From sequence record ON568341.1: a DNA stretch of 64,000 bases, one strand, 5' to 3'. Below the pieces are notes generated by a model, which worked only from the letters and a program-made list of their open reading frames with translations, did no database searches and had not been told where the DNA came from. Below, piece by piece: positions 3,975 through 64,000 of this stretch; the first letter of the stretch is position 1; every line of letters starts with the position of its first letter. The translations under genes and the position numbers were made by a program.

Positions 3975-4139
3975 ATGAAGAAAAAGAATATTAAAGAGAA
4001 TGCATCCACAGCATCTACTTCGGCAGGTGCAATTGCATCTGTCAGCACTGGTTTACATTATCCATTACATCGTAGATTGCCTCCAACTAACTTCTTTGGG
4101 TATAAAGTAGTAGAGATAAAAGATAAGGATAAAGAATGA
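3975..4139 (+). CDS. small hypothetical protein (possible internal head protein)
   Basis: ATG 3975 chosen over track start 3945 (follows the previous stop). MKKKNIKENASTASTSAGAIA. Confidence 0.5.
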   Translation: MKKKNIKENASTASTSAGAIASVSTGLHYPLHRRLPPTNFFGYKVVEIKDKDKE

Positions 4140-4528
4140 AACCCTATACTTTCTACACGATACATACTGTAGTAGATATTGGTGACGGTAAAACCCCAAC
4201 AATCATAGATTCAAAATTCACTGGTGCTATGAACTTGTCTAGATTGTTGGAAGCAATTATGGTATATGATTATCCTATGATGGTAAGTGTTGTTAAAAAT
4301 GAAGTTGATTTATATAAAGATAATAATTCATCTTTTTATAATATACCAATTACATGGGGTAAATGTACAATAAGCACATTTAAATTCGCTATACCAATGG
4401 ATGTTGAACTTCGATTACATGGTATTCCATTAGTTCTACCAACTGAACTAAATGGAAAACGAATAACTAAATTTATCACATCTGGTGATGATATCAACAT
4501 TAGCATCAGTAAACAGACCTTTTCTTAA
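4136..4528 (+). CDS. hypothetical protein
   Basis: 130-aa ORF, ATGA overlap with the previous gene. Confidence 0.7.
   Translation: MKPYTFYTIHTVVDIGDGKTPTIIDSKFTGAMNLSRLLEAIMVYDYPMMVSVVKNEVDLYKDNNSSFYNIPITWGKCTISTFKFAIPMDVELRLHGIPLVLPTELNGKRITKFITSGDDINISISKQTFS

Positions 4529-61370: not shown

Positions 61371-61374
<4 letters not shown>
61189..61374 (+). CDS. small protein, possible diverged MTHxEW-family member
   Basis: GTG 61189; KTFDEWYQ. Confidence 0.45.
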
Positions 61375-61890
<516 letters not shown>

Positions 61891-61891
61891 A

Positions 61892-62071
61892 ATGACACAC
61901 AAAGAATGGATGTCCAAACAACATAAAGAACATGATTTCTTTGGGAATGGTATTCGTCAGGTACACTATGACATCTTAAGAGATGAAAATCTTTTCAGGT
62001 CATATGTTTTGGATACCAGAAAACCCTGGTTTATATGCGAACTGGCATTTAGAAAAACAATCAAACAATGA
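61892..62071 (+). CDS. MTHxEW mini-gene family member 2 (59 aa, not in track)
   Basis: MTHKEWMSKQHKEHDFFGNGIRQVHYDILRDENLFRSYVLDTRKPWFICELAFRKTIKQ. Confidence 0.7.
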   Translation: MTHKEWMSKQHKEHDFFGNGIRQVHYDILRDENLFRSYVLDTRKPWFICELAFRKTIKQ

Positions 62072-62165
62072 ATATAGAAAATTGCGTTAGTGTATCTAAA
62101 GCACTTGCATAAATGATTAATTCATTATATAATGATTATCATTGGTTCTAAATGAGGATAATATT

Positions 62166-62438
62166 ATGCATTTTGAAAAATTCAACACAAGTCGTGACAC
62201 ACGCATTGATGTTCTTTATGAAACACAAGACTCAATTAGTATTCGTACACGTAGTGGTGATGTATATCATGACTGCACTATTGGTTGGAAACAGGGAAGA
62301 ACACGTAGTGCAGAATTCGATAATTATCGCTTCTTCCAAGATGACACCACAATCTGGCCTGAAGATGTAGAAGATATTGCAATCGAAGATGAACATAAAG
62401 ATGAATTTATCAAATTTAATCCCCAAACCGAATCATAA
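62166..62438 (+). CDS. hypothetical protein
   Basis: GAGGA RBS before ATG 62166; promoter TTGCAT-17-TATAAT at 62106-34. Confidence 0.65.
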   Translation: MHFEKFNTSRDTRIDVLYETQDSISIRTRSGDVYHDCTIGWKQGRTRSAEFDNYRFFQDDTTIWPEDVEDIAIEDEHKDEFIKFNPQTES

Positions 62439-62452
62439 ATAATGGGACAGCA

Positions 62453-62571
<119 letters not shown>

Positions 62572-62575
62572 AATA

Positions 62576-62652
62576 CGGGGTATAGCACAATTGGATAGTG
62601 CAAGAGAATTCTAATCTCTAGGTTGGGGGTTCAAGTCCCTCTACCTCGGCCA
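62576..62652 (+). tRNA. tRNA-Arg(UCU)
   Basis: CGGGGTA/TACCTCG acceptor, AGAGA-ATTCTAA-TCTCT anticodon arm, TTCAAGT T loop, CCA. Confidence 0.92.
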
Positions 62653-62675: not shown

Positions 62676-63015
<340 letters not shown>

Positions 63016-63023
63016 TTAAATAG

Positions 63024-63431
<408 letters not shown>

Positions 63432-63453
63432 ATTCAGTACCAAGGAGATTAAT

Positions 63454-63520
<67 letters not shown>

Positions 63521-63526
63521 GAATTC

Positions 63527-63870
63527 CACAATCAGACGTATATGGTGTAAGCTACGTCGATGCTATCCAGAACAAGATCTCTGGTACTCTAGGAAGTGGT
63601 GAATGTTAACCTAGACGGGTTTGATAATTGGACGATAGGCAATTATTACTTGACTAGCAGGTTGAAACTAGAGGTGACAGTCCTTCACCAAACTGGAAAA
63701 CCGGATGGACTTTTATTTAAAAGGGTAAGGCGTGGAAATATGTTTACAGTAGTTACTTTTAGTAGCCTGTACGCCCCACGTTAAGGTAGTCGAAAGGCAA
63801 GTTAAAACGGGTAGTTATAAAGCTGAATTAACAGCGGCGTTTAACAGCGTCACAAAATATACGCATGTTG
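63527..63870 (+). ncRNA. candidate structured ncRNA or long structured 5' leader (family not recognised)
   Basis: Follows a consensus promoter, has no RBS-supported ORF, is visibly GC-richer and contains at least 8 consecutive helices; ends approximate. Confidence 0.6.
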
Positions 63871-63886
63871 AATGAGAGGACTAGCC

Positions 63887-64000
63887 ATGATGTTTACTCA
63901 GGAACGATTAAACGAGATTGAGCAAGAACTCTTGAAGATTCAACATGAATTACAAGCCGTTGTTCGTCCTGTTAATTCAGATAATAACGTTTTATCAAAG
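63887..64000 (+). CDS. hypothetical protein, runs off the window end
   Basis: GAGAGGA RBS; MMFTQERLNEIEQELLKIQ... Confidence 0.6.
   Translation, partial: MMFTQERLNEIEQELLKIQHELQAVVRPVNSDNNVLSK

Follow-up and report, generated by a model that had tools for sequence, protein, structure and literature searches.

Organization of the locus

The window analysed here is a stretch of 64,000 nucleotides (nt) from the genome of Escherichia phage UE-S1 (ON568341.1), a jumbo E. coli phage of 358 kb belonging to the Asteriusviruses; window coordinates are those of the record. The subject of this work is a structured stretch in the unannotated gap between UES1_110 (63071–63424) and UES1_111 (63887–64141). 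The gap lies inside the transfer RNA (tRNA) region of the phage, with tRNA-Gly, tRNA-Ser and tRNA-Arg upstream (61577–62652) and tRNA-Ser, tRNA-Met and tRNA-Asn downstream (66918–67256). Within the window, tRNAs are found by ARAGORN at 61577, 62482 and 62576 only. On the plus strand, a sigma-70 promoter is located at 63492–63520, composed of the −35 hexamer TTGACT (63492–63497), a 17-nt spacer and the extended −10 element TGaTATAAT (63515–63520). It agrees with the consensus at 11 of 12 positions and has the TG, which bears out the claim of a first-pass annotation of this DNA that the stretch has its own promoter. Transcription is predicted to start at ~63526–63528. As read from the sequence, 63492–63853 is a non-coding transcription unit in which one strong promoter precedes two independent structured RNA modules, module A (63526–63712) and module B (63722–63853). 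In a BLAST comparison with 50,697 phage records, the whole unit (63523–63853) is 96–97% identical in ~30 Asteriusviruses and ~80% identical in the Klebsiella Alcyoneusviruses RaK2 and K64-1.

The first-pass annotation had proposed one RNA of ~340 nt. In evolutionary terms this does not hold, since the modules occur apart and relatives carry a promoter or a tRNA-Arg between them. Module A is present without module B in five other phage lineages, and module B without module A in the Asteriusvirus JNE01. There the same promoter abuts module B directly, so module A amounts to an insertion or deletion of ~200 nt between the −10 box and module B. The same promoter type also directly precedes module B in K64-1 and in the metagenome contigs L013 and L014, where it stands between the two modules, in L013 together with a tRNA-Arg. 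In UE-S1 and phage 121Q the modules are fused and presumably co-transcribed, but evolutionarily they are separate genes.

Structure and covariation of module A

Module A (plus strand) is a structured RNA of ~185 nt with seven hairpins and three pseudoknots. A covariance model, R1, was built from 18 homologues, which were then realigned with it and score 112–230 bits; the alignment was fitted to a model that holds the nested helices without the pseudoknots, and many of its rows are close relatives. Over the 18 homologues, the full model of 55 pairs is 91.2% paired, compared with 25–42% when the partners are slid, and 32 of the 55 pairs show compensatory changes, a level reached in none of 500 shuffles. 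When only the helices and the pseudoknot of the first-pass annotation are considered (46 pairs), the alignment is 90.1% paired, compared with 24–43% for slid partners, with 29 compensatory pairs, again reached by 0 of 500 shuffles. The G-U pairs of module A (e.g. UG17, GU14 and UG13) fit only the plus strand, which is the tRNA strand. Because 32 pairs are kept through two-sided changes, and because many are G-U pairs that would be A-C mismatches on the other strand, selection acts on a single-stranded RNA of plus-strand sense.

At the 5′ end, CCAC (63526–63529) pairs with GUGG (63596–63599) in the loop of hairpin P3 to form pseudoknot III (PK-III). A register-free check of four sequence types gives CCAC:GUGG, GCAC:GUGC in Aeromonas phages, CCUC:GAGG in phage KP13-16 and CUAC:GUAG in the uncultured contig L008, each tetramer pairing having a 2–9% chance in shuffled loops. 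Hairpin P1 (63531–63561; AUC-(A)-GACGUA/UACGUC-GAU) shows compensatory changes in seven of nine pairs and holds a conserved G-R-Y-G in its loop; in Morganella phage Mm5 its helix is continuous, without the bulge. P2 (63567–63584; CCAGA/UCUGG) differs in length between lineages, reading CCG..CGG in SdyM006 and Proteus phage 1 and being longer, with a UUCG loop, in L008. P3 (63588–63615; UCUAGG/CCUAGA), whose loop carries the 3′ strand of PK-III, is 100% paired, and five of its six pairs are compensatory. The single-stranded joiner between P3 and P4 (63616–63622) reads CGGGNUU and is near-invariant in the alignments. In P4 (63623–63647), GAUAAUUG pairs with CAAUUAUU, with compensatory changes in six of seven pairs, and the loop GACGAUA is kept in all lineages.

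PK-I is an H-type pseudoknot (63648–63671) that crosses P5, joining joiner J4/5 to the first half of the P5 loop. Its stem S1 is formed by ACUUG (63648–63652) and CAGGU (63658–63662), and its stem S2, which is P5 itself, by CUAG (63654–63657) and CUAG (63668–63671); the first loop is a single nucleotide and the third (63663–63667) is A-rich. S1 is 98.9% paired (AU11/CG6; CG14/AU3/GC1) and S2 100% paired (UA15/AU3; AU16/GC1/GU1). This pairing accounts for the P5 loop being conserved only as CAG....AAA. PK-II (63673–63710) combines P6 (GGUGA/UCACC, 63673–63677/63685–63689; 100% paired in the 18 homologues) with the pairing of its loop GUCC (63680–63683) to GGAC (63707–63710). This is the loop pseudoknot proposed in the first-pass annotation, and covariation confirms it: two pairs covary (GC11/AU6 and UA12/CG5/UG1), and ACCC:GGGU, GCCC:GGGC, AUCC:GGAU and UCCC:GGGA occur in its place across the homologues. 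PK-I and PK-III were found by a scan for further stacked, covarying column pairs. P7 (63693–63696/63701–63704; CUGG/CCGG), in the connecting loop of PK-II, is weakly supported and absent in Aeromonas phages.

The helices listed in the first-pass annotation are all present in the sequence: GACGTA/TACGTC at 63535–63540/63553–63558, CCAGA/TCTGG at 63567–63571/63580–63584, TCTAGG/CCTAGA at 63588–63593/63610–63615, GGTGA/TCACC in P6 and ATAATTG/CAATTAT at 63624–63630/63640–63646, the last one position from where it had been placed. Also present are CTGG-AAAA-CCGG (63693–63704) and, further downstream, the GGCG..TACAG..GTTAC arm (63729–63782), GTC-GAAA-GGC (63789–63798) and GCTG/CAGC (63822–63825/63832–63835). 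Invariant joiner nucleotides in module A are CGGG, GACGAUA, UUGAC, GAGGU and GAUGG, and the P6 loop has no U33/R37 anticodon-loop signature. The P1 loop (GGU, GGC or GAC; 63544–63546) can pair with the P6 loop (63680–63682) in 17 of the 18 sequences. Such a pairing would compete with PK-II and could be either an alternative conformation or a coincidence that G-U pairing permits. A long-range pairing of UUCCAC at the 5′ end of module A with GUGGAA in module B was dropped, because the two modules occur apart and CCAC has a covarying partner within module A.

Distribution and mobility of module A

Module A alone (~63522–63708) is found by BLAST at 85–92% identity in T4-like phages (the Bragaviruses PM2, Pm5461 and SdyM006, and Morganella phage Mm5) and in T5-like Proteus phages of the Novosibviruses (1, 2 and M4H10_20). 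More distant copies lie in the T4-like Aeromonas phages 65, ZPAH1, AS-zj, CC2 and P19, in the Stephanstirmvirinae phage KP13-16 and in the uncultured 120-kb IMG/VR contig L008. In every lineage the module sits in a tRNA cluster and on the tRNA strand, often flush against tRNA ends. It lies between tRNA-Gly and tRNA-Asp in PM2 and SdyM006 (gaps of 0–3 and 11–13 nt), between tRNA-Leu and tRNA-Ser in Proteus phage 1 and KP13-16, directly after tRNA-Pro in the Aeromonas phages AS-zj, P19 and ZPAH1, directly before tRNA-Glu in Mm5 and ~190 nt upstream of tRNA-Thr in L008. In several phages its 5′ pseudoknot strand is 3–7 nt from the 3′ end of the upstream tRNA, and in UE-S1, 121Q and L013 the module begins at a promoter. 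The earlier description of the stretch as a structured RNA near the tRNA cluster is upheld: the stretch is non-coding and structured and is situated within the tRNA region.

Relative to UE-S1, module A is 90.9% identical in PM2, 94.6% in K64-1 and 84.9% in the T5-like Proteus phage 1, whereas the isoacceptor tRNA-Gly, tRNA-Arg and tRNA-Ser genes of the same phages are only 56–72% identical. An identity of 85–95% against such a background implies recent horizontal transfer, since purifying selection alone would not give this pattern. Judged by its placement and identity, module A is a self-contained mobile cassette that has passed between at least six unrelated groups of phages, each time entering a tRNA cluster in the same orientation as the tRNAs. 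Homing endonuclease genes lie near several of the module A and B loci, namely a segD-like gene in SdyM006, an HNH gene in UE-S1 and an endonuclease gene in XT18.

Immediately behind module A in KP13-16 lies the 3′ half of a Felix-O1-type tRNA-Leu (L019 1632–1679; 92% identical to the tRNA-Leu of Sf14) that has no 5′ half, a recombination scar at the boundary of the cassette. The tRNA cluster of the same phage also contains a 111-nt match to the Rfam tRNA model (L019 1211–1321), which may be a tRNA with an insert, and a sub-threshold tmRNA-like match (transfer-messenger RNA; L019 656–731; 31.6 bits against a gathering threshold of 47). Two pattern scans over 185,579 species of bacteria and archaea, each represented by a single genome, found no copy of module A. 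A metagenome scan added close relatives, the variant L013 and three chance matches (L015, L017 and L018) only. Even with filters off, the module has no match in T4, PA5oct ncRNA001, Sf14 or XT18.

Module B and its truncated 3′ end

Module B (plus strand) is a second structured RNA, of ~135 nt, which in UE-S1 is fused behind module A without a promoter of its own and has its 3′ end cut off. Its model, R2, scores 144–165 bits at seven loci and 52 bits in the Kuravirus XT18. By RNAalifold and pair counting over six sequences, it contains 38 pairs that are 96.5% paired, five of them compensatory. The 5′ domain (63729–63782) is a long irregular hairpin made up of GGCGUGG:CCACGUU, an AAAUAU internal loop, UACAG/CUGUA and GUUAC/GUAGC; in XT18 it is 83% identical, with GCUGUGG:CCUCAGC. 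The GNRA hairpin GUC-GAAA-GGC that follows (63789–63798) shows GC/GU and CG/UG changes, on one side only.

The last part of the module, 63810–63853, is the remnant of a three-way junction, with the 5′ strand GGUAGU of the closing helix and the hairpins GCUG/CAGC and GGCGUU/AGCGUC. In relatives the junction is closed by GGGUGGU:ACCAUCC and followed by a U-run. UE-S1 lacks both the 3′ closing strand ACCAUCC and the U-run, and the closing helix is broken in no other row of the alignment; homology between UE-S1 and every relative stops exactly at 63853. In relatives, module B forms a small-RNA gene by itself, which possesses both a promoter of its own and a three-way junction resembling a terminator. 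Beyond 63853, UE-S1 has UES1_111 and UES1_112 (64152–65849, minus strand, a 565-aa tail-fibre/hydrolase-like protein), inserted within the tRNA region.

The segment 63810–63853 is a truncated copy of a recurring element of ~50 nt, which consists of a closing helix, UUAUAAA, the hairpin CUGAAUURACAG, a second hairpin and a U-rich run, and shows compensatory changes among the R2 matches. The element also stands alone, after tRNAs and before module A, in K64-1 (L003 2440–2493 and ~4090–4142) and in L014 (~365–415 and 1753–1806). It looks like a reusable terminator or 3′-end module of these tRNA regions. In Kuravirus vB-EcoP-XT18, an unannotated, hairpin-rich non-coding stretch of ~790 nt (L025 1014–1802) holds a full-length homologue of module B (1498–1628) and ends in a T-arm/ACCA-like sequence just upstream of the endonuclease gene; no Rfam family matches this stretch.

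Genes around the unit

The gene downstream, UES1_111 (ribosome-binding site (RBS) GAGAGG and start at 63887; 63875–64000, plus strand), encodes an 84-aa protein. No plus-strand terminator is predicted between 63527 and 64000. Since the rearrangement at 63853 removed the terminator of module B, the A-B transcript would run into this gene, and UES1_111 is probably read through from it in UE-S1. The neighbouring proteins have no Pfam domain and fall only into PHROGs of unknown function, so there is no candidate protein partner nearby.

Just upstream of the promoter, 63420–63490 is a 71-nt segment that repeats part of the promoter and includes a strong RBS and an open reading frame (ORF) of nine codons (MFKDERPDL). 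The segment is missing from the contig of a close relative in RNA run X16, which makes it an indel difference. Further upstream, four paralogous small ORFs of 54–59 aa (61371–61547, 61892–62071, 62676–62840 and 62837–63001) are interleaved with the tRNA genes, all beginning MTH(E/K/Q)EW(M/L); 121Q and JNE01 have three tandem 165-nt ORFs at the matching position.

Comparison with known RNA families

Rfam 15 (4227 models, including tmRNA, RNase P, 6S RNA, group I introns, ribozymes, riboswitches, ROOL, GOLLD and manA) gives tRNAs only and no match over module A or B, either in the window at the gathering threshold or in 63300–64000 at E up to 10, in line with the first-pass statement that the stretch could not be matched to GOLLD, ROOL, tmRNA or RNase P. 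Six homologous loci searched at E up to 0.1 return tRNAs only, with nothing over either module, and ARAGORN places no tRNA or tmRNA over them in the window or in the homologous loci. The features of a group I intron are likewise absent: the location is intergenic at every locus, complete tRNAs lie on both sides in PM2 and SdyM006, and RF00028 is not matched. Module A is not described in the main parts of the surveys of structured phage RNAs (PMC10690425, apart from its supplement of 10,006 candidates) or in papers on jumbo phages (PMC7318152 and others).

Closest in kind to modules A and B are RNA C and RNA D of T4, stable RNAs of a tRNA region. These RNAs (the species 1 and 2 stable RNAs, encoded by rnaC and rnaD) are 119–139 nt long, are released together with the tRNAs and have no known function (PMC3014915; PMC12685909). 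Like module A, they are small, non-coding and encoded within the tRNA cluster of a phage, adjacent to tRNA genes and on the same strand as these. They differ in build: RNA C ends in a tRNA-like T-arm, which module A, organized around three pseudoknots, does not have. In T4 68500–74500, neither R1 nor R2 finds a match on the rnaC/rnaD strand, even with filters off. A homology of module B to rnaC, suggested by the shared GGAAAUAU.UUU, was rejected, as rnaC folds that stretch into a helix and R2 has no match in T4.

ROOL and GOLLD are also RNAs of phages or prophages near tRNA islands, with many pseudoknots and no known protein partner or function (PMC12286853; PMC5737381). However, they measure 500–800 nt or more and come mainly from Firmicutes, rumen, lake and mycobacterial sequences, whereas module A is found in virulent phages of Enterobacterales and Aeromonas; at ~185 and ~135 nt, modules A and B fall well below the 500 nt exceeded by members of these families and match neither family model. 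The manA RNA motif (RF01745) is short, pseudoknotted and phage-associated, and forms RNA-only cages (bioRxiv 10.64898/2026.07.01.735769). It differs in occurring in cyanophages and Photobacterium, usually in 5′ untranslated regions, and its Rfam model has no match at modules A or B. In form, module A also resembles the intergenic-region internal ribosome entry site (IRES) of dicistroviruses, but in form only, as the latter belongs to eukaryotic RNA viruses, has no sequence relation to module A and acts in cis on translation. This IRES is ~190 nt long with three pseudoknots, one of which is a 5-bp stem with a 7-nt loop pairing with a downstream strand. On these comparisons module A is a genuine family of structured phage RNA not described before, with module B beside it a second, both in the category of unexplained tRNA-cluster RNAs.

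Metatranscriptome coverage of the locus

Expression was assessed from assembled Logan contigs of metatranscriptomes mapped on the window. In the wastewater metatranscriptome X15, the tRNAs are covered 50–69-fold and 63432–63851 6–12-fold, with zero coverage of the coding stretch 62844–63431. In RNA libraries, the share of 63527–63853 is roughly double that of the 1 kb around it. This coverage is suggestive of a stable RNA but falls short of proof.

Proposed function and alternative explanations

We propose, with a probability of roughly 0.6, that the stretch is a promoter-driven non-coding unit of two modules, in which module A is a mobile cassette with three pseudoknots and both RNAs are stable, act in trans and are made together with the tRNAs. 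The modular make-up of the unit, its anatomy, distribution and covariation, and the absence of both modules from known families are shown directly; stability, action in trans and joint production with the tRNAs are inferred. How would such an RNA be produced, and what might it act on? Where module A lies beside tRNAs, the tRNA-processing enzymes of the host would cut it free as a discrete RNA: RNase P would cleave at the tRNA that follows, and RNase E, together with trimming of the 3′ end, would act at the tRNA that precedes it, where the AAUU just behind the CCA resembles an RNase E site. In UE-S1 it would start from its own promoter. Module A would then accumulate as a stable RNA made along with the phage tRNAs, by analogy with T4 RNA C and D. 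Action in trans is suggested because there is no constant neighbouring gene, and the combination of a compact fold and invariant single-stranded joiners suggests that a macromolecule recognizes the RNA. Most probably the RNA binds such a partner, whether a protein of host or phage or a component of the machinery for translation or tRNAs, and serves as a decoy or sponge in the conflict between phage and host. From its tRNA surroundings we favour, with moderate-to-low confidence, an action on this machinery or on a host defence aimed at it. Regulation of a neighbouring gene by module A is unlikely.

Several observations weigh against this proposal. The case for a decoy that acts in trans is one of exclusion and analogy only. 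Because module A has no tRNA-like T-arm, recognition of the module itself by RNase P is not implied. Some close relatives (JNE01, G17, phAPEC6 and Sharanji) go without module A, which is therefore dispensable. The effective number of sequences in the module A model is ~2, and since identity between families is very high, much of the set of 18 is not independent. The metatranscriptome evidence consists of assembled contigs in which DNA carry-over is possible, and it gives no transcript ends, because the contig ends coincide with the repeated promoter. Finally, folding energy is no better than that of shuffled sequences, the z-score of the minimum free energy being −1.72 for 63527–63870, −1.15 for the opposite strand and −1.0 for module A alone; for module B it is likewise not significant (−0.4 in UE-S1 and −1.75 in 121Q). 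The minimum-energy fold also differs from the evolutionarily conserved one. As neither strand and neither module is significantly stable, stability is unusable as evidence, and the case for a structured RNA rests on covariation. Both folding energy against shuffles and covariation had been named in the first-pass annotation as tests of an RNA at this place; the former was not passed, and the latter, which is the stronger, was passed decisively.

Could module A instead be an RNA that processes itself? A ribozyme freeing itself, or the neighbouring tRNAs, from a polycistronic tRNA transcript would explain the compact multi-pseudoknot fold with invariant joiners, as in ribozyme cores, as well as the 5′ pseudoknot strand close to tRNA 3′ ends. 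We regard it as quite unlikely, for even a search at E up to 10 brings no match to a ribozyme family of Rfam, such junctions can already be processed by RNase P and RNase E of the host, and in UE-S1, 121Q and L013 the module starts at a promoter, where cleavage is unnecessary. To our knowledge its topology does not fit that of hepatitis delta virus (HDV)-like, twister, pistol, hatchet or glmS ribozymes either. An unlikely but slightly more probable possibility is that module A, perhaps with module B, assembles into an RNA-only multimer shaped as a cage or ring, as ROOL, GOLLD or the short manA RNA do. The ecology is shared with ROOL and GOLLD (phage-borne, in tRNA islands, with no known protein partner; PMC12286853), RNAs of less than 200 nt can form 60-mers (bioRxiv 10.64898/2026.07.01.735769), and the conserved loops L1 and L4 are unexplained by intramolecular pairing. 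However, there is no homology to the ROOL, GOLLD or manA families and no conserved self-complementary loop, and the palindrome CUAG of P5 changes to CUGG/CCAG in KP13-16, which fits pairing in cis.

A regulatory leader of the gene at 63887 had been among the suggestions of the first-pass annotation. Such a cis-acting 5′ leader, e.g. a riboswitch or an attenuator, gains something from the probable co-transcription in UE-S1, where no terminator separates promoter and gene, and from the stem and U-run that end module B ~25 nt before the next gene in relatives. Yet the junction with this gene is unique to UE-S1, with homology breaking at 63853; in relatives a terminator-like element and then three different, unrelated genes follow module B, so it is not the leader of a particular gene, and module A is followed by tRNAs, promoters or module B across the loci. 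There is no constant position before one gene family, as would be expected of a cis-regulatory leader with an expression platform, and no alternative terminator/antiterminator pairing was seen. The comparative context has already largely refuted the leader, which we consider very unlikely. That conservation acts on the DNA, as a homing-endonuclease target, a recombination site or another protein-binding element of a mobile tRNA region, would suit the very high nucleotide identity across phage families, the nearby homing endonuclease genes (SdyM006, UE-S1 and XT18) and rearrangement scars such as the half tRNA-Leu of KP13-16. It is contradicted by the two-sided changes in 32 pairs and by the G-U pairs; homing accounts for the spread of the cassette but not for the kept pairing, and a DNA element is highly improbable. 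The least credible candidate, to which we give practically no weight, is a small protein. An ORF of 62 aa does exist (63596–63784, plus strand), and it is the only overlapping ORF of at least 30 aa; it starts with GTG, has no RBS, as had been noted, and is not a gene. It spans the boundary between A and B, which is a promoter or a tRNA in relatives, and is shifted out of frame by one-base indels in Pm5461, Mm5 and KP13-16. No ORF is conserved in frame among the homologues, which have indels of 1, 5 and 6 nt, and substitutions follow base pairs rather than codons. Short coding sequences for hypothetical proteins are annotated in GenBank over homologues of modules A and B in 121Q (gp129, 74693–74776), slurp01, JP4, the SD-series Salmonella phages and others; as calls made on non-coding RNA, these annotations are probably spurious.

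Significance

It has been known for 50 years that phage tRNA clusters encode extra, unexplained stable RNAs, T4 RNA C and D among them, and ROOL and GOLLD make it clear that enigmatic RNAs with structure gather at tRNA islands. Module A is a compact and tractable example, with secondary and tertiary pairing that is unusually well defined, and it sits in culturable phages of E. coli, Klebsiella, Proteus and Aeromonas, for which natural pairs with and without the module exist, e.g. 121Q and JNE01. The analysis also corrects spurious hypothetical-protein annotations in several GenBank records. A bolder idea, which we put forward as doubtful, is that module A is the founding member of a new class of small, mobile, triple-pseudoknot phage RNAs that travel with tRNA genes and act directly on the host. 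If so, it might serve, e.g., as a decoy for a defence nuclease directed at tRNA or translation, or as a mimic that binds the ribosome or a tRNA enzyme, and it would be an RNA-only counter-defence or takeover factor common to T4-like, T5-like, phi92-like and jumbo phages. Module A spread recently over at least six lineages of phages as the tRNAs beside it diverged, which argues for a portable benefit to its carriers, and with module A the role of tRNA-cluster RNAs becomes directly testable by genetics.

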